A DNA stretch of 63,732 bases, counting the filler, from Octopus bimaculoides (Eukaryota): the NCBI RefSeq assembly GCF_001194135.2. It is 5 parts of 4 records of this genome, joined end to end, with 100 filler letters (N's around TTAATTAATTAA, not from the genome) between each part and the next. Parts side by side here need not be neighbours in the genome. Positions count along the whole stretch, not along the records: positions 1 to 25,709 come from NC_068984.1; 4 more parts are not named here. One strand, written 5' to 3'. Under the pieces are notes generated by a model. The model saw nothing but the letters and a program-made list of their open reading frames with translations, searched no databases and was not told where the DNA came from. This document shows positions 5,640 through 25,709 of the stretch, piece after piece (within the stretch, counting starts at the first letter, position 1; each line of letters opens with the position of its first letter). A program made the translations under genes and the position numbers.

Positions 5640-5825
5640 ACAACGCACTACTCTACTTATTCCTCCTCCCCCACGGGATGCATACTTCATGCTGTTCGCA
5701 AGTATGTGTTGATAAGTTCACCTACACTTGGCAGTTAGCTGCGAGCTTTGCGAAAGAAAGTTTCTTAGCTGCAACTCATGTTTTTAACCAAACTTCAAGG
5801 CTGTGTTTGCTGTCAATCTGTAAGT
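5640..5825 (+). promoter_or_regulatory. Candidate alternative non-coding first exon (donor GTAAGT at 5820)
   Basis: Locally higher GC/CpG unique sequence ending CT|GTAAGT. Confidence 0.3.
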
Positions 5826-6501: not shown

Positions 6502-8753
6502 TTTTCATTTTAAGTTTATTTAAAATTAGTTGTGTACGCTATTCTTGTACTTTGCTGTTATTTTGTCAGTATTATATTTTAAAAAAATAATAAGCGCATA
6601 TTTTGATGTTTACATTTTTTCTCGCTTGTTTGAAACTTGATTATATATGACATCCAGACTATCTTTTTTTTTTTTTTACTAAATATATTCGCAATTTGTA
6701 CCTCAGTTTGATTGCACTGTATTCTAAGATCGCTTGTGGCTTGTTTAGAGTAACCGCCTCTTTTAATTCGATTTTTATTCCAATTAATGGTGCAGCCATT
6801 CGACACCTCTGACCTCTGCTTTGGTGCTTAAACTTTGAAAGAAATTCTTAATTTATCTGCTTATTCGGTTTACAACTGTTTTGATAATCTAATTTAGATG
6901 ATATCGTTAAAGCCATTAGATTGTAATGTGCATTCGTTTTTGTTAGCCGAGCAGTGTTGCCACACCTCTCCTGAGGTCCCTTCCTTATTTTTTTGCTCCA
7001 TATTTGAACAAGTTGAAATCCTATTCCCTTACTGCTGTTGACATTTTACACTATCTCACTTTGACACATATCGGGTAAAAGTGGCTATTTTAAATCTTGT
7101 TCCACCTGTTCGAAAGTAAATATCTAACTTGCTTATAGTCTCAAATATTTAACAGTTTAAACAATTAAGTAACTTAAATTATTTTTGTAAAATCCTCAAC
7201 AACTCATAAATTCTGGACTACAAATGATGTAAGTTTATATCTCTTTTGTAAGTCAACACTGACAATGTATACTGAAATGAAATCGTCTTTCAATACAGGG
7301 TATTTTAATCCTGATGCCACCATTGTTTATAATCTCGACCTCTGTTTTCTCTGAAAATTAACACTTCATTTAGTTTCACGTTAGAGTAGGTATTCCGACA
7401 AGTTAATCGTTATTATATTGAACGTGTGTGTTATTTCGTAATTATCGTTTAATTTTGTTCGGTGATTGAACTTTTCGATAGCTTCACTATGGTAACCTAA
7501 GATAACGCTGTTATTCTAAGAAAATATTCAGATAAAGGTGCTTTTTGTTGAATGCTTCCACTAACCAATTCTAATTATTATTCGTGATACCCAGTTACCA
7601 AATATGTTATTTAGCACCATGTTAACCCTGATCCAATGACCATTTGCCTTTTCAATCTATCAAGGATTGCATTGTCCAGTAAGGTGTAATTTAAGAGTTA
7701 TTTTGGCTTTTATTTGTAGCAGGCTGAGCCACTGCAAGTTCCCTCGTTGGCTCACAACTACGAAATATACTTAAAATAGGTAGTCAGCTGTTTGCACTTG
7801 AGACAAGAGAAATTCAAATACTAAAAACAGGTAAACTCGACTTCTTAAACTTTCTATACATTAAATCGAGGGTGTCAAACTGGTTTGGCCTATGTGGGCC
7901 AGACTGAAGCATAAATTAGATCTCACGGGCTGAATAAGGGAATTCTTAAAATCCCTATTCGTAATGTAGGCCAAAGTAAATGGATCAAAGGATAATATTC
8001 AGTATAACAACATTATTAACGATAAGAAAAGGAAAGAATATGATATATTAGCAAACTCTGTATGCAGAGATGTGTGGGAAAATCTCATCCACATGGTGTA
8101 CAAATAAGCGTATTAAGAGTCCTGAGAGTAGAGTGGGAATAGAGATAAAAATTGTCTGATGACTGCATACATTTCTCGAGAAAACAAATACTTAATAAAA
8201 AGCTTGCACTGTTCTGTTGCAATCCTTTCAATATCAACAGAATCCATTCAGAGCAACACGTGTAAATTTTGAAAAAAAAAAAAAAAATTTGGTGTGTGTA
8301 TAGACAAAGTGAAAGGGAAATAGGGTACAGCTTTTATATAAATTCATAAGTTTTTCTCCATTGCTTAAGACAAAGTTTCCCTAAGGTGCACTGATTAGAC
8401 TTATTGGAACCAGTGTTAATCTTAACTCTAGTTGGACTCTGTCTTTGAATGCATGCTAGTGATATATATATGTATATATTTATTTATTTATTTAACAGAC
8501 TGTTTTAAAATTAAAAAATAATTATAACATTTTTTATACCCTTGAACTGGGGGCTACACTAAACATTTTTGCAGGCCTATATTAAATTTTGAAATTCTGG
8601 TTCTATAAAACTAGCTACTGAAACTATTTGGAAATAATTCTTCTAGCTTGCCATTATTATCTCGTGTTACATCACAAATGAAGAATAAGGAACCAATAAC
8701 CATTTCTATGTGGTTGTTCAACCTGCTAGAAAAAACAGCAAAAGCTGCCTTAA

Positions 8754-10505: not shown

Positions 10506-10843
10506 GTAATTTTAGGGCCATATTAAATTAATTTGATTTAGATTAATGATTCTCTTTTGGAATAGTTAATGTGGAAGCAGATAAAGAAAGCTATAAATAA
10601 TAGCATGTAAATATTGGGTTAAGGAACACTTTAGATAATGTCAAAGGATGCTTGTGCGATATGAACCTAGATCTCCTGTAAGCATGTCATTCATTAGACC
10701 AAAGCAATTCTTTGAATTTCTTTATTCATTTTAGAAAACTGTATTCTTTCCAGCAAGAATTGTTTGTTGTTGACATATTGAATTAACTCAAGAAGGCCTG
10801 CCCACCACACAGAATTGAGTTCCTAAAACCAAGGTGTCATGTA

Positions 10844-11270
10844 AAAAGCACTGGTATTGGTGCCACATAAAAAGCACTCATATTGGTGCCACATAAAAAG
10901 CACTCATATTGGTGCCACGTAAAAAGCACTCATATTGGTGCCACATAAAAAGCACTCGTATTGATGCCACAAAAAAAGCACTGGTATTGGTGCCACAAAA
11001 AAAAGCACTGGTATTGGTGCCACAAAAAAAAAGCACTGGTATTGGTGCCACAAAAAAAAGCACTGGTATTGGTGCCACAAAAAAAAAGCACTGGTATTGG
11101 TGCCACATAAAAAGCCCTGGTGTTGGTGCCACGTAAAAAGCGCTGGTGATGGTGCCACGTAAAAAGCGCTGGTGATGGTGCCACGTAAAAAGCGCTGGTG
11201 ATGGTGTCACGTAAAAAGCGCTGGTGATGGTGTCACATAAAAAGGACTGGTGCTGGTGCCACATAAAAAG
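10844..11270 (+). repeat. Minisatellite, 16 copies of ~26 bp (AAAAAGCACTGGTATTGGTGCCACA/GT)
   Basis: Counted by eye; continues into the RTE-3'UTR-type repeat (GGTTGGC..AGGAAG) to ~11430. Confidence 0.9.
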
Positions 11271-11929
11271 TACCTTGCACACTCTGTAGAGTGGTTGGCT
11301 TTAGGAAGAGGATTCAATTGTAGAATTCAGACCAAAACAGACTAAAAAACCTGGTGTGGCCCCTGGTCTTGCCAGTTCCTGTCAGGCTGTCCAAACCATG
11401 CTCATATGGAAAACATGTTAAATGTTGTTGATGAGGATGATAATGAAATAGTGGGTTAAAAAATACATTCGGATAGGAAAAGTTGAAGGTTAAGTTGGTG
11501 TGTGTGTGTGTGCACGCATGTGATGGTTGTAAATGAGTGTCATCATCATTCAAGTAGTGTCCTCCTTTGATTCCAGTCTTCCATGAAAACATGTCTGGTC
11601 ATGGGTAATTATAATCTTACTTGAAACAGGTGAAGTTTGGTGACAGGAAGAGTATCTAACCATAGAAAATCCATTTCCATCTGACTCTTATACAAGCATG
11701 GAAAAGGGAACATTGAAACAGCAATGTTTGTTTATTGAAACCAATTGTCTATTAATGTTTTAATTTTAATTTTAAATTACTTTTGAATATATTAACTTGA
11801 TTTTTCTAAGCTCAGATTATGTTAAGAACAGTTTGCTTATTTTGGTGTAGGGAGTACATTTATCTTTTTGTTTTTTGAAGATTACTATCTTTATTTTTTA
11901 ATTGGTTCAGTCATTAGACTGGACTGACC

Positions 11930-12312
11930 ATACTGGAACACTGCATTGAGTTTAAAAAAAATTTTTTTTTAGTTGGCACACAAATGGAGCTTAGCACTTA
12001 TTTCTTTTAAGTCTTGTACTTATTCTATCAATCTCTATTGCTGAGCTGCTAAGTTATGGGGATGTAAACAAATCAACACCAGTTGTTGAGTGGTGATGAA
12101 ACAAACAGAAACAAAGACACACTCATGCACACACATACACACATAGATACAATGAGCTTCCACATGGTTTCTGTCTACCAAATTCACTCACAAGGCATTG
12201 GTTGGCCCATGGCTATAGTAGAAGATACTTATCCAAGGTGTCATGCAGTGGGACTGAACCCAAAACCATGTGGATGCAAAGCAAACTTCTTAATGTCACA
12301 GTCATGCCTGAT
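11930..12312 (-). mobile_element. SINE family A, diverged
   Basis: Both halves present around a (CA)n centre. Confidence 0.8.
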
Positions 12313-12416
12313 GTTAATCCTTAAAAATATCAAAATAACATTTAAAAAAAAAATTCTTTATTTTTTTGTAAACTGTTATATCTCTGAATATTTTCTCTAT
12401 TTTTCTTTTTGATTAG

Positions 12417-14622
12417 GTGTCAGACAAAGAAACAGATGAGTCTTGCATTGATAAAAAATCAGAAGATATTATATGCTCTTTGCCACGTAAATCTGAAGAC
12501 TGGACTGTTATAGCAAATAATCTTGCTTTAGAAAGAGATTATGAAAGTAGAGTAGCTGCAGTTACTTGTCAACAGAGCACACGTGTAAAGCAACCTTCAA
12601 GTAGAGTATCTAAAGACCAAACTCAAGAAAAGCAGGTTTCTGTAAAAACACTTTCCAAGAATCAAGATAAATTGCAAAAATTATTAGAACCAGATGAACA
12701 GGAAACTAGAGTAACTGCACTCCATTGTCAACAGAGCACATATGTAAAGCAACCATTAAGTAGCGTACCTGAAGACGAAACTCAAGAAGAGGAGACTTTT
12801 GTAGAAACACTTTCTAAGGATCACTATAAACTGCAAAAATTATTAGAACGTGATGAACACAAAACTAGTGTAATTTCACTATATTGTCAACAGAGCACAT
12901 ATGTAAAGCAACCATTGAGTAGCGTTCCTGAAGACGAAACTCAAGAAGAAGAGACTTTGGTAGAAAAACTTCCTAAGGATCAAGATGAATTTCAAAAATT
13001 ATCAGAACTAGATGAACAAGAAACTAGAGTAACTGCAATCTCTTATCAACAGAGCACATGTATAAAGCAACCTTTAAGTAGTGTACCTGAAAACGAAACT
13101 CAAGAAGATCAGACTTTTGTAGAAACACTTTCTAAGGATCAAGATACTCTGCAAAAATTATCAGAACAAGAGGAACACGAAACTAGAATAACTGCACTCT
13201 CTTATCAACAAAGTGGACCTGAAAACGAAACTCAAGAAGATCAGACTTTTGTAGAAACACTTTCTAAGGATCAAGATACTCTGCAAAAATTATCAGAACT
13301 AGAGGAACACGAAACTAGAATAACTGCACTCTCTTATCAACAAAGTGTACCAGAAAACAAAACTCAAGAAGATCAGACTTTTGTAGAAACACTTTCTAAG
13401 GATCAAGATACTCTGCAAAAATTATTAGAACCAGATAATCAGTTGAAAACTATTGATAGCTCTGCTGAAAATCATCTGGAAGAATTTATAGAAGATGCAA
13501 GACTAGTAGGGTCAGCACAATCTGAGCAGAAGATCAAATCTGAAGAATTCTCTGAAGAAGTTTGTGTAAACAACTTTGACACTGTGGAAGAAAATGAAAT
13601 AAAGAAAGGTCAGCCAAGTGTTGAAGAAGAAGATTCTATAAAGATTGTTGAGAAAGAGCACCAAGGTGAAACATCAGAGTTTTCCACTGAAAGTGTAATA
13701 TTGAAAGAGAAACATTTGAGTGTTGAGTATTCTTCTGAACCCAGTGGGAAAACTGTCTTGCCATTATTAAACGAAGAGTTGTCTGTGACTGATGCTACTT
13801 CAAACTCATTTTCTGAATGTAACTGGCCCCAACTATTACCATTGAATCAAGAGATAAGTTCAGAAACAACCAATTCTTTGTCAAAAATGTCTTCTAAATT
13901 GTCAGACAATCAAATAAAATGCAATGAAAATAAGCAAGATATGGATAATACTCCGGCATTTTTAAACCTTGATAACTTATGTGATAATTCTGATAAAGCC
14001 AAAGTTGATTCAACACATGAATCCAAAACAGAGACAAATGACGCAACTTTACATTTACCTTGTGATGACATTGAAAAGCCTATCAGTTCTTTAAACGAAT
14101 GCATCAGTTTACTCACTAACTTAGATAGTACATTGGCCAACAAACGAGAAGAAAGTCCTGCCAGTGATGAACTGATTGACACTTTAGTTTATGAACCTGA
14201 TGTTGATGATGAGGAAGAGGAAGAAAATGTAGAAACCATAACCAGTTCCTTAGAAGAAGCAAAAAGTACAACAGCTTCATCAACTGTTGAAATCAAGAAG
14301 GAATCTGAAGAAATTTTGAATGAAGTTAAATTAAATAACACTGAACTGAAACCAGCTCCAGACGTTCTACCTGACAGTATTTCGTCTGTGCCAGAAACAA
14401 TAAAAAGTACTGATTCTTCCTCTAAAGATGATGAAAAGACAGGAAATAGTAGTAGTACAGTTAAGAAGAAAAATAAGAAGAATAAAAGCACTGAAAATCA
14501 TTCAACAGGAAATCAAAGTGTCAATCATCAAAGCACTGTTGCAGTGAAATCTGAAAAGCCAACTGAAAATATATCAAAACCACATAGCACAAAGAACAAA
14601 AAGAAAGAGGATAAAACTTCTG
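12417..14622 (+). CDS. TXLN: Taxilin-family gene, giant internal exon (acidic/Ser-rich, tandem repeats)
   Basis: Open frame of 735 codons from acceptor TTAG|GTG to donor TCTG|GTATGT (phase 1); ends KNKKKEDKTS and joins in phase to the taxilin exon at 24080. Confidence 0.8.
12530..13437 (+). repeat. Coding tandem repeat: 4 units of ~53 aa (159 bp) + 2 units of 44 aa (132 bp)
   Basis: E(Q/H)ETR(V/I)TALSxQQS[TxVKQPLSS]VPEnETQEdxTFVETLSKDQDxLQKLxE; the last two units lack 9 aa. Confidence 0.95.
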
Positions 14623-14729
14623 GTATGTATATTTACGTGTGTATGATGGCATACACTTTTATTGGTTTCAGTCATTGAATTAGAGCATTGCCTTGAAAAA
14701 TTTAATCAATTAAGTTGACCCCAGTACTT

Positions 14730-15085
14730 ATTTTTACTTAAAGTTTGGTGTCTTCTCTGTCTATTTTTATTTTGCTGGACCACAAAGGTACTTGGATGTA
14801 AACCATCAAATATCTTTGTGAGTGCTGTCACTAAAGACAAGGTGTGAAGACACTCACACACACACTTGTACATGCACACACACACACACTTGTACATGCA
14901 CACACACGCACACTTGTACATGCACACACACTCAGTAGTTTCTACACAGTTCCCTTCCACCAAATTCATTCACATGGCATTGGTTAGTCCAGGACTTTTG
15001 TAGAAGAAACTTGCTCAAGGTCCTGTGCTGTGGGACTGAATCCAAACCACGTAGTTTTGAAGCAGGCTTTTTAACCATGAGCCAA
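14730..15085 (-). mobile_element. SINE family A, old copy
   Basis: Degenerate head and tail around a (CA)n-rich centre. Confidence 0.65.
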
Positions 15086-15374
15086 TATCAAATAATAAAA
15101 TGGATCTTGGTCAGCATATTCAGTTGTTTGATCAGCTGGACTACCAAGTGCATTGAAGCAGCCTATAAGTGGATGAGTCTTTCACAGCTATATGTATCTT
15201 TGCCATAAATTCTTAGGCAGAGCAGGAAACAGTGTGACAAAGTTGGACCTTTTGGGTTAGAGGTTCACTTCTTTTTATGGGTTTTGACATAAGTTCAGTT
15301 CACCCAGTTTCACTCTTAAAACTTGTATTGAATGGGGGCTACAGTAAATGATACTTAGCCAAAATGATATACAG

Positions 15375-15720
15375 AAAGTGTAATATTGAAAGAAAAACAT
15401 TTGAGTGTTGAATTTTCTTCTGAATTGAGTGGGAAAACTGTCTTGCCATTATTAAATGAAGATCTGTCTGTGACTAATGTTACTTTGCACTCATTTTCTG
15501 AACATAACTGTTCCCAACTGTTACCATTAAATCAAGAGATAAATTTAGAAATAAAGATGTCTTCTAAATTGTCAGACAATCAAATCAAATAAAATGCAGT
15601 GAAAATAAGCAAGATATAGATAAAACTCCAGCATTTTTAAACCTTGATAACTTATGTGATAATTCTAATAAAGTTAAAGTTCATTCAACACATGAATCCG
15701 AAACAGAGTCAAATAATGCA
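15375..15720 (+). pseudogene. Intronic duplicate of part of the taxilin giant exon (~13690-14045)
   Basis: Directly alignable (SVILKEKHLSVE..SGKTVLPLLNE..SSKLSDNQIK); has an in-frame deletion and a stop at 15590-92. Confidence 0.9.
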
Positions 15721-17149
15721 AGCTTCTTAACAATTCAACCATACCACATCAAGTGTATTTTTACATCACTTTAGTTATTTAACCTCAGTTCAGCCATGAC
15801 CCAGTAGACCTATATCCAATGGTCTAATGATTGTGATTGTCATTGTCTCTCTAAGATTACAGTTTCAAATGTTTTCTCACTTTTTGAAATGTTACAGCAT
15901 GATTTGAAGGATATCTGACAGATCAAAAGCTCGTGTAGAAGCACCTTTGTTAGCTTGAATAACATATTTATATGATAGATGTAAATCATACTTACAGATT
16001 GAGTATTGAACAACTGACTCATGGGTTAGGATTAAAATCACTGCAAGCATTTTGCTGCAATTTTGAGCGTGTGCGCGCATGCACACACACACACACACCC
16101 TTGTCTGTCCATGGAACCATGGAAAAGTAGACATTAAAGCAATGATAGTATATATGGATATGTGTATATGTATAGTTTCAGCAGATATATTGTCATTTAA
16201 TGTCTGTTTTCCACAGTTTGAGAGAATCTGATGAGTTCAAAGACTGCATTGTGCTCCAATGCTTTGGCATGGTTTCAATGGCTGGATTCCTTTCCTTTTC
16301 TCAACTACTTAGTAAACTTAGTGCTTTTTCATGGCACAAACACAAATGATGTCATCATGCAATTTGCAAGAGTAAAGGCCTAAAGGGAGCCTGAAGTAGA
16401 ATAGAAGAGAGTGTGATGATTGTTGGTGGGGTGATGAGAGAAGGTAAAGTATGATGAGAGGAATAGGTTGGTAGTTGTGAGAGGGTAATAATGGAGAGAG
16501 TAACAGTAGGCACTATTGGGGGAGTGAGTATGGAAAGGACAGGAGGTAGGGAAAGGATTAGTCAGAGTTTAGTGAGAGAAGAAGGGTCAGGATGGTGAGG
16601 TGGGTTGTGCTGGTGGTTCCAAGGCTTCTATCCAAGTTTGCATGGAGGGAAAGAAAACATTAAAGAGAGAAATAGATGGTGGGTAGCAAGGATCTGGGGA
16701 GAGTCATTGTAGATAAGAGAGAGAGAGAGAGATGAGTGGGTATTGAGGAGGCAGAGAAGCTGTGGGAAGAGGACAGTGAGAGGAAACAAGGCAGAAAATG
16801 GAAGAGCACTGGGCGAGTGTATTGAGAGTAGAGAAGGGGAAAGAGAGGCTGGAAAGTATGATAGAGGTTGTTGGGGAAAAATTCAGTATGAATGCAGAGA
16901 AAGCACCCCAGGTAGTTGGCAGTGGCTGTGGAGAAGAGGATGGTGAAAAAATGAGATAGGGAGGAGCAGTAGGTGAATGCAATGAGAGAAAGAAAGGTTG
17001 GATGTAGAGAGGGGGAAGCCTAGCTGTGGGTGGAAGGGAACAGAGTGAATGTAATGACTAAGAAGAGGTTGGAGTAGGAGCAAAGGACAGAAGCAGTGAA
17101 AGTATCCATGATTAGGAGGCTGAAGATAAAGGACAGTGAAGGGAAAGAG

Positions 17150-19254: not shown

Positions 19255-19525
19255 GTATTTATCTGTCATTGCAACAGAATAAATATTTGTGAAGCAAAAA
19301 TCGTAAGGATTACTTTCTACAATCACTTGGTTAAAATCCATACAATAACAAAAACTGGCAAGTTTTGAAGCTAGCAAATTTTGTGGTAATTCGCCACTGC
19401 ACTGCTTTTTGTACATTTGTCCCTCTCTAGTATTTTTTATTTGTCCTAACTTCTTTAATTGAACATTTAATAACATGTCCAAATGGCTTCACAAATATTT
19501 ATTCCTTAATTTATCGTTGCTTCGT
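19255..19525. repeat. ~270-bp repeat, left arm of an inverted pair
   Basis: Reverse-complement match to 21072-21355. Confidence 0.85.
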
Positions 19526-19699: not shown

Positions 19700-19930
19700 T
19701 TGCAGGTGCTGGTGCCATATAAAATGCACTCGTGCTGTGTAAATGCATCCCTGCTGGTGGCACGTAAAATGTACCCAGCACACTTTGTAAAGTGGTTGGG
19801 GTTAGGAAGGGTGTAGAAACCATGCTAAAACAGACATTTGGAGTCTGGATAGCTCTCCAATTGGCCAGTTCCTGTCAAATTATCCAACACATGCCAATGT
19901 GGAAAACAGACATTAAACGATGATGATGTA
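19700..19930 (+). mobile_element. RTE 3'UTR-type repeat (family C here), ending in (GAT)n
   Basis: GGTGGCACGTAAAA..GGTTGGGGTTAGGAAGGG..CATTAAACGATGATGAT. Confidence 0.75.
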
Positions 19931-21071: not shown

Positions 21072-21355
21072 ATGAATGCAATGATAAATTAAGGAATAAC
21101 TATTTGTGAAGCCACTTGGACATGTTATTAAATGTTTAATTATAAGAGGTTAGGACAAATAAAAAATACTAGAGAGAGACAAATGTACATATAGCAGTGC
21201 AGGGGTGAATTACTACAAAATTTGCCAGATTCAAAACTCGCCAGTTTTTGTTATTGTATAGATTTTAACTGAGTGGTTGTAGAAAATGATCCTTATGATT
21301 TTTGCTTCACAAATATTTATTCTTTGATACATCCCTGTTGCAATAGCAGATAATG
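21072..21355. repeat. ~270-bp repeat, right arm of the inverted pair
   Basis: Lies between the DNASGH and VFLPPN motifs of the Tigger remnant. Confidence 0.85.
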
Positions 21356-22259
21356 TTCTTGTAGTTTTCCTGCCTCCAAACTGAACTAACTTGATTTACC
21401 CTATGGACCATAAAGTTATTGCTGCATTTAAAACTTAGCTATTTAGGGTGCATCTTTTAAAGAATTGATCAAATTCTTAGAGGGTGAAACTAAGTCAGGA
21501 ATAACAGGATTTTGGTCTGGTCTTTGAAAATTTGACAGCAGCATAGTAACAAGTTAAAAACAGCAATGAATCATGTCTGGAGTAAAATTTATCCAACCTG
21601 TACTGCAAACTTCCTGAGTAATGAAGAGACAATACATAATGCTAATCAGAAGATTGTTGGGTTGGCATATCTGGTTGGATTTAAAGAAGAAATATCTAAT
21701 GAGGACCTCATGGAGAAGGAACAGCATCATGCAGAAGATGATTGCAAGTGTGAGGATGTAGAACCACCATGAATTTTTATGACTCAAGTTTTGATAAAAC
21801 TATGGCTCTTTACATTGAGAGAGATCCTCAGAGAGAAGTGAAAATAAAAAGCAAAGAGTAGATACAAATGCTACAAGGAATTTATATGAACAGTAAAAAA
21901 TGCATAGCAACAAACCTTAGACATATTTCTAAGTAAATAATTATTTGACTGATACTTATTAATCTTTCTTAAATCTATTTCTAACACACATATATTTCAA
22001 TGTTTAATACAAAAAGTGTTTTGAGTGTTTGTTTGTTGATGTTTTTATGACTAGAAGTATGCCATAAGAATATATTGTTGGAATGTAACTTGTTTGTATT
22101 GTTGAATCTTTTGTAAAATTGGTTTTATTTTACATTCTTTCACTTGTAATAAAACTTCTCAAAATCCTGCACACACCATTTAGGACAGGCTTTGTTATGT
22201 ATATATTTATGTATATTTGAGTGTGTGTGTGTATGTATGTATGTATGTAGATATATATG

Positions 22260-24079: not shown

Positions 24080-24219
24080 ATCATGTCTTGAAATCCTTAA
24101 GCAATATACCAACAGCTGAAGGAAAATTATCAGCACTTTCTAAGAAATACACTACCATGAGTGAAGAAAATCGAACCCTAATTACTAATCAGAGAGTGAT
24201 AGAAAGAAAACTCTTGGTG
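24080..24219 (+). CDS. TXLN: Taxilin coiled-coil domain, first exon
   Basis: (D)HVLKSLSNIPTAEGKLSALSKKYTTMSEENR resembles alpha-taxilin LMQTLNTLSTPEEKLAALCKKYAELLEEHR; acceptor TTTTAAG, donor GTAGGT, phase consistent. Confidence 0.85.
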
Positions 24220-25471
24220 GTAGGTTTCTACATGATTTCTATTTCATTGTCATTTTATTTCTATTTTTTCATGCTTGCTTTAGTTTGGACAGAGGTCTTT
24301 GTCGTCATCATAGCATATTGCCATCTGCTGTGGTTCATCATCATTTCTTAGCATTTTGTGATCAGATTTCACCACCTCTTCCTTTACATTTTTCTTCTGC
24401 AGGTTTCTTTCCTTGGATCACCTGACACTTCTTTAACTGACCGTTAACCTTCATACACATCACTTGCCAACATCGGCACATTCTTCTTTCTTGCACACAA
24501 CAGTTGATTCCTCTTATTCCCAGTTTTTCTCTCAACTCATTTCATTCATGTACACCAACATTACATGTCAAACAGAGCATGCTCATCTTGTTTCTTTCCC
24601 GCCTCTGCTCATCCTCCACTTTCAATTCTTCTGTCTTATTACCATTCAGTATCATACTTATTACACAAGCTTTATGTAATCAGCCATTCACTTGGAGAAA
24701 AAAATCCTTTTATCATTATCAGAAATATTTCCTGATCTTTTTCCATTATTTTCTTTACTTTGGCTATTATACCTTGCAACACTCACCTTCACTGTTTATT
24801 AGATAACCTAGCTAACAGAAGCAGTTAACTATTTCCAGGTGCACTTACTACTAACTACTTTTGTGCATCTGTTATATACAAAATCCTTCTCTTTCAAACT
24901 ATCCATGATCCTATTGCATCTTTTATGAAACTTTTACGATGGAAAAGTCTTCGTTGATTTTACTAAAGAATCATGTGTATCATTGTATAATATATTTTGC
25001 ATGTTCATTCATAGAAGCAACAAAAGAAACCAACTTTAAAATAACAGTGGGACTTTATTCCTTCGTAAAGTGGTTCAGAGGATCAAAGCAAGACATTACA
25101 AATTCTGTTGGATGTTGTTCATCGTTTTGATAATTTTCAGCTTGGATCAGCATTGGTTACATGGGCTCCGTTACATATTAACTCTCCTCTGAAAATGACA
25201 GGAGCTGCATAACTTGCCTGAATAAAAAACTCTTGCCCTTCTGACTCGTAAATAATTTGTCGCACCAATTTATGGAAAAAGGAGGCTCCAGAACACATGC
25301 AGGTTTAGTTGTTTGAAATATATTACATGCAATGTGATTGGACCTCTATCCAATTCCCGCACAACACTCAACACCGGGTTCAATAAATGTCCAATAATTC
25401 ATATGATAGGTATTTTAACAGATCACAACAGATTAGTGGACGTTAAACGATGATGATGATGATGATGATAT

Positions 25472-25709
25472 ATCATCATCATCATCATCGTTTAACGTCC
25501 GCTTTCCATGCTAGCATGAGTTGGACGATTTGACTGAGGACTGGTGAAACCGGATGGCAACACCAGGCTCCAATCTAATTTGGCAGAGTTTCTACAGCTG
25601 GATGCCCTTCCTAACGCCAACCACTCAGAGAGTGTAGTGGGTGCTTTTACGTGTCACCCGCACGAAAACGGCCACGCTCGAAATGGTGTCTTTTATGTGC
25701 CACCCGCAC
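25472..25709 (-). mobile_element. RTE 3'UTR-type repeat (family C), truncated by the spacer
   Basis: (CAT)n GTTTAACGTCC..GGATGCCCTTCCTAACGCCAACCAC. Confidence 0.85.

Follow-up and report, generated by a model that had tools for sequence, protein, structure and literature searches.

Taxilins (alpha-, beta- and gamma-taxilin; Pfam family PF09728) are syntaxin-binding coiled-coil proteins in which a low-complexity N-terminal region precedes the coiled coil. According to PMC3972091 and the references therein, the binding of syntaxins outside SNARE complexes and a role in vesicle traffic are known only for mammalian taxilins. For human alpha-taxilin, the mapped partner interactions run via the coiled-coil middle region, which is bound by CEP170, and the N-terminus (residues 1-185) neither binds CEP170 nor is needed for centrosomal localisation (PMC8816381); this is consistent with an N-terminal region that can vary freely. 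Coding minisatellites are the second described system with which the octopus locus can be compared. Protein tandem repeats are very common (PMC3995336), and tandem-repeat length variation is concentrated in disordered regions (bioRxiv 10.1101/339663).

The gene studied here lies in a window of 63,732 nucleotides of Octopus bimaculoides DNA (the whole stretch that was analysed, filler included), of which positions 1 to 25,709 come from NC_068984.1. Its product shares with the taxilin family the full-length Taxilin domain, an intron of conserved position and phase where this domain begins, and a low-complexity N-terminal region before the coiled coil. The size and the architecture of this region differ, however: It comprises about 750 residues in octopus as compared to about 200-330 in the long bivalve isoforms that were examined and to residues 1-185 in human alpha-taxilin (PMC8816381), and a single giant exon encodes it in octopods, as opposed to three exons in Pinctada. 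Moreover, it contains an array of 53- and 44-aa units that is an Octopus-specific feature among the taxilins found here. As in other coding minisatellites, the units of this array are in frame, measure a multiple of three nucleotides and are arranged head-to-tail, some units are hybrids such as unequal exchange would generate, the copy number differs between close relatives, and the unit sequence appears to drift almost neutrally. The surrounding region would be disordered according to a weakly supported prediction. With lengths of 159 and 132 nt the octopus units are long, and with 5-7 copies they are few; their variation is known from differences between the assemblies of species and between RefSeq models. 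The array can be classed as a coding minisatellite that is specific to one lineage and located in a tail predicted to be disordered, and it represents a well-known kind of protein evolution in a gene for which a model was already public.

Exon structure and identity of the gene

Three coding exons of the gene are present in the window:

5778..5819, + strand: coding exon 1, ATG start and 14 codons, MFLTKLQGCVCCQS; located by tblastn of XP_014771703.1 and of the O. sinensis protein
12417..14622, + strand: coding exon 2 of taxilin; exact match to XP_014771702.1
24080..24219, + strand: coding exon 3, 140 nt, (D)HVLKSLSNIPTAEGKLSALSKKYTTMSEENRTLITNQRVIERKLLV; start of the taxilin coiled coil

Exon 2 measures 2206 nt, i.e. 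735 codons and one base, and is part of an open reading frame of 753 codons (12417..14678, + strand); at this base composition, 735 open codons would occur by chance with a probability of about 4e-24. The exon is preceded by a polypyrimidine tract ending at 12416 with the acceptor AG at 12415-12416, and it is followed by the donor GT at 14623-14624 (GTATGT directly after 14622). It encodes an acidic N-terminal extension that is rich in Ser, Thr and Gln. Exon 1 provides a leader of 14 residues with a cysteine cluster, ends in phase 0 at the donor GTAAGT and is 100% identical between O. bimaculoides and O. sinensis at the nucleotide level; the counterpart in Argonauta hians reads MFLTKFQGCVCCHS. 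Exon 3 is flanked by the acceptor TTTTAAG and the donor GTAGGT.

The splice sites that join exons 2 and 3 are canonical, and the junction splits an Asp codon, with the lone G at 14622 and the AT at 24080-24081. Beyond the junction, the frame runs on through DHVLKSLSNIPTAEGKLSALSKKY..., which corresponds to positions 1-47 of the Pfam Taxilin domain; the domain itself starts in the final eight codons of exon 2 (KKKEDKTS). That 14622 joins 24080 in phase had been proposed in the preliminary description, and this join is supported by two sequence comparisons: Translation of the exons 5778-5819, 12417-14622 and 24080-24219 yields exactly the first 796 residues of XP_014771702.1 (O. bimaculoides "girdin" isoform X1, 1193 aa), and the bivalve Pinctada imbricata has an intron at the equal position and in the equal phase, inside the Asp codon (G/AT) after KKKEDKTx. 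The peptide across the junction, KKKEDKTS/DHVLKSL, aligns with KKKEDKTIDHILRAL in many molluscs, and the same exon structure is present in O. sinensis and A. hians. If exon 1 is joined straight to exon 3, translation terminates after three codons; taxilin can therefore not be made from the start codon in exon 1 unless exon 2 is included, and any stop or frameshift in exon 2 would eliminate this product. A sliding identity scan of the window against O. sinensis revealed no clearly distinct additional conserved exon, Rfam and tRNA scans of the window gave no match, and neither did Pfam for six transposon-like open reading frames in the window.

The assignment of the gene to the taxilins was borne out by the full product, which scores 270.8 bits on PF09728 (cut-off 30.3) and covers profile positions 1-300 of 302; the window alone covers positions 1-47 with 17.1 bits and stays below the threshold by itself. 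Taxilin is the sole Pfam domain in the complete proteins of O. bimaculoides and O. sinensis. The closest non-octopod relatives are the alpha-taxilin-like proteins of Haliotis, Pecten, Pinctada and Mytilus, with 58-63% identity over the domain, and the matches listed in a search with the taxilin domain only were all 546 aa or shorter, apparently owing to a limit on length. Two annotated octopus proteins were recovered in a protein search, and UniProt lists a truncated model of the octopus gene as 'Alpha-taxilin'. The RefSeq names 'girdin' (O. bimaculoides) and 'myosin-J heavy chain' (O. sinensis X2) are misnomers, the former since Taxilin is the only Pfam domain of the record. An identity as girdin (CCDC88A) was considered and rejected: The Pfam scan of the complete proteins of both species detected neither a HOOK nor any other girdin-type domain, so the octopus protein and girdin are alike as long coiled-coil proteins, and the name is an automatic misnomer. 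The repeat had initially been regarded as unrecognised, and this holds for the literature, since our search for work on octopus or cephalopod taxilin and on octopus girdin yielded nothing relevant and no paper on the repeat was found. It does not hold for the databases, as RefSeq has contained the repeat-bearing proteins, misleadingly named, from the first annotation of octopus onwards.

Long mollusc taxilin isoforms start in one of two ways, either with MGNxxS/T or with a basic leader that carries a cysteine cluster (MFLTKLQGCVCCQS in octopods, MAARGGFKSLFCCFCGS in Crassostrea, MTRRRFRIFRCCF in Haliotis). We take the MGNxxS/T start to resemble a myristoylation signal and the mollusc leaders presumably to resemble lipid-anchor signals.

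Anatomy and origin of the array

Tandem Repeats Finder (TRF) detected two overlapping periods in exon 2, one of 159 nt (4.2 copies, 12543-13210, 84% matches, score 895) and one of 132 nt (2.7 copies, 13080-13435, 96% matches, score 670). Both are multiples of three. Together with the alignment of the units and their identity matrix, this resolves the exon and its surroundings as follows:

12543..13442, + strand: in-frame tandem array of six units (TRF, unit alignment and identity matrix)
12543-12701, + strand: unit 1, 159 nt (53 aa)
12702-12860, + strand: unit 2, 159 nt (53 aa)
12861-13019, + strand: unit 3, 159 nt (53 aa)
13020-13178, + strand: unit 4, 159 nt (53 aa)
13179-13310, + strand: unit 5, 132 nt (44 aa)
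13311-13442, + strand: unit 6, 132 nt (44 aa)
13443..14622, + strand: non-repetitive acidic part of exon 2, 393 codons; aligns with Argonauta along its length
15371..15756, + strand: decayed, frame-broken copy of the exon 2 segment 13686-14046, located in intron 2; 84% nucleotide identity over 366 nt

The unit alignment confirmed the six head-to-tail units and the common deletion of nine amino acids in the final two: Units 5 and 6 are devoid of the same residues, T(Y/C)(V/I)KQPLSS. The array occupies codons 43-342, and the earlier view of an exon built from the repeat has to be restricted, for the 735-codon open exon does carry the array but only 300 of its codons (41%) are repeat. With a pI of 4.5, the array carries a net charge of -31 on its 300 residues; the product of exon 2 is strongly acidic as well (pI 4.5, net charge -77) and rich in Ser, Thr and Gln. 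The non-repetitive part holds a poly-Glu stretch and a Lys-rich patch, KKKNKKNK. The copy in intron 2, which tblastn aligns in two frames, exists in O. sinensis as well; it has arisen as a by-product of duplications at the locus and lies outside the protein.

The locus was compared with its orthologues in O. sinensis (L001), Argonauta hians (L002) and O. vulgaris (L003). The array is present in the equivalent exon in three independent assemblies (the window, GCA_006345805.1 and GCA_951406725.2), and the frame is open in every unit at all four genome loci, i.e. the window and the three orthologous ones. These observations bear on the possibility that the repeat is no native coding sequence at all, and was generated by misassembly or by the exonisation of a transposable element or a satellite. 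SINE-like copies indeed adjoin the exon on both sides (12118-12293 and 14899-15074), and the surrounding introns are rich in repeats. The SINEs, however, match many places in the loci, whereas no further copy of the unit exists in the 25.7-kb window portion or in the 67-kb O. sinensis locus. Given this difference, the recurrence of the array in independent assemblies, the open frame in every species and the single-copy homologue inside the orthologous Argonauta exon that is described below, such an origin is extremely improbable.

In O. sinensis, the array has the identical layout of 4 x 159 and 2 x 132 nt. Orthologous units share 93-97% of their nucleotides between O. bimaculoides and O. sinensis; for paralogous units, the identity is 77-96%. 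The six units therefore predate the split of the two species. The situation is different in A. hians. The taxilin of this species (GAB1597583.1, 'girdin-like') is encoded by a gene of the same structure, with an exon 1 of 14 codons, a giant exon 2 and subsequent taxilin exons; it starts with a cysteine-cluster leader as in Octopus and exhibits 72% identity to the Octopus protein over the non-repeat part and the taxilin domain. Yet its exon 2, a single giant exon of 617 codons (L002, 6797-8647), contains only one 53-aa unit that has strongly diverged from those of the Octopus array, ...TKQPSGKEVLENFTQEKQ...NQGKLNKLLEPNQ. This segment is directly followed by PLKSINSS, which matches the LKTIDSS immediately after unit 6 of Octopus. 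Moreover, the dS between paralogous units (0.04-0.36) is below that between Octopus and Argonauta (0.5-0.8). From the single Argonauta copy and the lower dS of the paralogs we can conclude that the array was amplified within the exon after the Octopus and Argonauta lineages had parted. Its source in the Octopus lineage was thus a segment that was already located within the exon.

This history bears on two further statements of the preliminary description. The lineage specificity of the repeat stands, with the array in O. bimaculoides, O. sinensis and O. vulgaris and the single copy in A. hians; beyond these species, the unit is absent from the other mollusc taxilins found here. The idea that the repeat had been grafted onto a taxilin has to be abandoned: The exon is an enlarged ancestral N-terminal coding exon, the position and phase of its 3' junction are the same in the pearl oyster, the codons at its 3' end (KKKEDKT) are conserved among molluscs, and a single unit is present in the same exon of A. 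hians. Neither word-indexed nor exhaustive HMMER searches gave orthologues of squid, cuttlefish or Nautilus that ranked between Argonauta and the gastropods and bivalves.

Exon 2 of A. hians also contains an unrelated array of its own further along the exon (156-168 nt, 2.7 copies), which is a second, independent amplification in the same exon. This Argonauta array occupies the very segment of which a decayed intronic duplicate exists in Octopus. The taxilin of Haliotis rufescens has a tail repeat of its own as well, NASKQEAVTE in about eight copies.

Copy number and the X2 models

The number of units is six in O. bimaculoides and O. sinensis, seven in O. vulgaris, one in Argonauta, and five in two RefSeq X2 models. 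In the O. vulgaris genome, the 132-nt period is present in 3.7 copies, and TRF together with the protein sequence gives a 4+3 layout in which the additional unit is a 44-aa hybrid of the head of unit 5 and the tail of unit 4. Exactly one 44-aa unit is missing from the RefSeq X2 protein in O. bimaculoides (1149 aa) as well as in O. sinensis (1148 aa), and the five-unit O. sinensis X2 protein is the reciprocal hybrid of the O. vulgaris one. Length variation of the array had been anticipated, and versions with five, six and seven units were indeed found between the assemblies of different species and the RefSeq models.

As the X2 protein is 44 residues short in both O. bimaculoides and O. sinensis, one might suppose that one 132-nt unit is removed from the mRNA in a regulated manner as an intron within the exon, and that the repeat would act as a splicing-controlled length switch. 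The sequences at the deletions speak against this: GT-AG, GC-AG or AT-AC ends are present in none of the 84 possible 132-nt deletion frames in O. bimaculoides and in none of the 13 in O. sinensis, so that the X2 forms are not ordinary splice isoforms. Moreover, the registers of the deletions differ between the two species, the deletions have the shape expected for unequal exchange or for template switching by reverse transcriptase between direct repeats, and the reciprocal seven-unit product is present in the genomic DNA of O. vulgaris. We therefore regard controlled splicing as highly improbable. The five-unit X2 forms are most likely length alleles or artefacts of reverse transcription between direct repeats.

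Taken together, codons 43-342 can be viewed as a coding minisatellite with the following proposed history. A segment of about 50 codons, single-copy in Argonauta, would have been amplified head-to-tail in the Octopus lineage, one unit would have lost 27 nt, and this short form would then have undergone a further duplication. Units 4 and 5 probably continue to take part in unequal exchange, which generates the versions with five, six and seven units.

Constraint, predicted disorder and the possible role of the extension

Between O. bimaculoides and O. sinensis, exon 2 is 96.3% identical at the nucleotide level and the introns about 92%. The overall dN/dS of exon 2 is 0.46, with 0.84 for the array and 0.27 for the rest of the exon, a contrast that is marginal (Fisher p ~0.03-0.05; only 39 changes in the array) and can be distorted by gene conversion between units, as unit 4 is 96% identical to unit 5 and unit 5 is 93% identical to its ortholog. 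Among the six units of the window, the pooled pN/pS is 0.99, in comparisons that are not independent of one another. Both values suggest that the unit sequences drift at almost the neutral rate, and no purifying selection on the units was seen between units or between these species. For the non-repeat part, an omega of 0.34-0.37 was obtained against Argonauta; this part appears to be under moderate purifying selection and to be more constrained than the array. Several positions (TFVETLSKDxDxLQKL, ETRxTA) recur in all units of all species, which may be a reflection of the youth of the array, and the stable layout of six units across the split of O. bimaculoides and O. sinensis could indicate some selection on length.

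AlphaFold2 modelled residues 1-380 with a mean pLDDT of 36.5 and a pTM of 0.15, from a shallow alignment of three close sequences only. The region is predicted to be disordered, in agreement with the disordered spacer that had been suggested initially and with a composition of the disorder type (21% D+E, 22% S+T, GRAVY -1.0), although a low pLDDT from so few sequences is weak evidence. The alternative suggestion of a scaffold is not supported, as the units show no sign of purifying selection (pN/pS of 0.99 among the units, omega of 0.84 for the two species). For the array region, neither a Pfam family above threshold nor a significant PDB relative emerged from the sequence searches. Two hits were taken as chance matches, one of the Pfam family DNA_alkylation on exon 2 (16.8 bits, below the cut-off of 21) and one of the PDB entry 6g6o 'Ika8' (E 0.01, with no stretch that passes alone).

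The main alternative to a mere spacer is a functional multivalent module, in which each unit would provide an amphipathic helix (QTFVETLSKDQDTLQKL) and an acidic Ser/Thr linker resembling casein-kinase-2 sites, and in which the copy number would set the valency of a partner interaction, or would extend or regulate the coiled coil. AlphaFold2 does draw one helix of 30-40 residues per unit with proline-containing linkers in between, but every one of these helices is of low confidence (pLDDT below 50). Similarly, the hydrophobic residues of the consensus unit are spaced in a roughly heptad-like manner and the core TFVETLSKD.D.LQKL is present in most units of three species, but the pN/pS of about 1 between units and the omega of 0.84 between species are not what conserved binding modules would lead one to expect, and no known domain or solved structure matches. 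The retention of six units in both O. bimaculoides and O. sinensis would also agree with a set valency; on the other hand, versions with five, six and seven units coexist among close relatives, and Argonauta has only a single, strongly diverged copy. All in all, a multivalent module is rather unlikely.

We consider it probable that the array extends a disordered acidic spacer or tether, that this extension is tolerated and variable in length, and that its units are no specific binding modules. The protein consists of the 14-residue cysteine-cluster leader, about 735 acidic residues that are probably unfolded, and the conserved taxilin coiled coil, and in this proposal the array would separate a possible lipid anchor from the coiled coil that binds syntaxin. 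Given that the units drift almost neutrally, selection appears to keep only the open frame and the bulk length, negative charge and flexibility of the region. The frame would be kept open because an essential coiled coil lies downstream in a product whose exon cannot be skipped; bulk charge and length are probably maintained by selection as well, whereas the sequence of the units would not be. It is tempting to go one step further and to speculate that the array acts as a heritable switch of length in a taxilin that is tethered to the membrane and expressed in neurons: The leader would be palmitoylated, the acidic repeat would set both the distance and the strength with which the coiled coil is held from the membrane, and alleles with five, six and seven units that segregate in Octopus populations would make individuals differ in their regulated exocytosis. 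This idea is at odds with the near-neutral drift of the units, and we judge it very unlikely.

These results leave the knowledge of vesicle traffic unchanged. They do correct the public annotation, as the proteins named 'girdin' and 'myosin-J heavy chain' in octopus are its taxilin, and length alleles or artefacts of the cDNA are a more likely basis of the 'X2 isoforms' of these records than splicing. For the taxilin family, the leaders of the mollusc proteins, which resemble lipid-anchor signals, suggest a possible answer to the open point of how taxilin meets membranes. For the octopuses, the 0.9-kb array could be a simple PCR marker for populations and species of the genus. Finally, the locus provides a clean and datable case of the growth of a disordered tail, from one copy in Argonauta via six copies in the ancestor of O. 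bimaculoides and O. sinensis to the reciprocal products with five and seven units.

Duplications of a taxilin exon 2 segment

A segment of the large taxilin exon 2 has been copied more than once in octopods. In O. bimaculoides, intron 2 contains, about 750 nt from its start, a decayed, frame-broken copy of the segment, and this intronic copy is shared with O. sinensis (21163-21495 of the locus L001):

13686-14046, source segment in exon 2
15371-15756, degenerate copy in intron 2, 84% nucleotide identity to the source

The equivalent stretch of the Argonauta hians protein is tandem-amplified within the exon (156-168 nt, 2.7 copies; 7359-7844 of the locus L002), and this amplification is an independent event. 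Together, the intronic copy in Octopus and the in-exon array in Argonauta indicate that the segment was duplicated at least twice, and by different ways. Lineage-specific repeats in the tail of taxilins are not restricted to octopus either: the alpha-taxilin-like protein X1 of Haliotis rufescens (P0286) carries its own tandem repeat, NASKQEAVTE, in about eight copies in the C-terminal tail.

Repeats and mobile-element-like features around exon 2

Several other repetitive features were found in the window:

71-196, 12118-12293, 14899-15074, SINE-like repeats, first set
11250-11442, 19752-19928, 25471-25663, SINE-like repeats, second set
232-714, + strand, 160-codon ORF (…RPDIIVLEKSRKECIIIVVAISTDVNV…)
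10842-11270, 26-nt minisatellite in intron 1, 16.3 copies, 93% matches
19276-19520 and 21078-21323, inverted 245-nt pair in intron 2, 91% identity, about 1.5 kb apart

The short dispersed SINE-like repeats form two families, the copies being 72-82% identical to each other. Exon 2 is flanked by one such copy directly 5' and one directly 3', and numerous further copies are present at the O. sinensis locus. The inverted pair could be the termini of a DNA transposon or a foldback element; the ORFs near it had no match in Pfam, nor did the 160-codon ORF, which we take to be reminiscent of the C-terminal parts of retrotransposon proteins from invertebrates, a putative assignment. The copy number of the minisatellite differs from that of its counterparts, a tract of about 900 nt in O. 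sinensis (L001, about 15062-15971) and 13 copies in O. vulgaris (8059-8395 of the locus L003). Within intron 2, the G+C content is raised to 0.43 at 16000-17000, with a strong G-over-C skew (0.49).

Public records and N-terminal leaders

Public records list the octopod taxilin as 'girdin', 'girdin-like' or 'myosin-J heavy chain' (RefSeq/GenBank XP_014771702.1, XP_014771703.1, XP_029634618.1, XP_036357986.1 and GAB1597583.1); Taxilin is the sole detectable domain of the protein behind these five records. The UniProt entry A0A0L8HK09 ('Alpha-taxilin', 689 aa) begins from a methionine inside exon 2 and does not include the repeat.

Exon 1 (5778-5819) encodes MFLTKLQGCVCCQS. Among the mollusc taxilins compared (P0124-P0132, P0285-P0315), the long isoforms have one of two kinds of start: MGNxxS/T, similar to a myristoylation signal, or a basic leader containing a cysteine cluster, similar to a palmitoylation signal. 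As judged from these sequence resemblances, the leaders suggest that lipid-anchored forms of taxilin may exist in molluscs.
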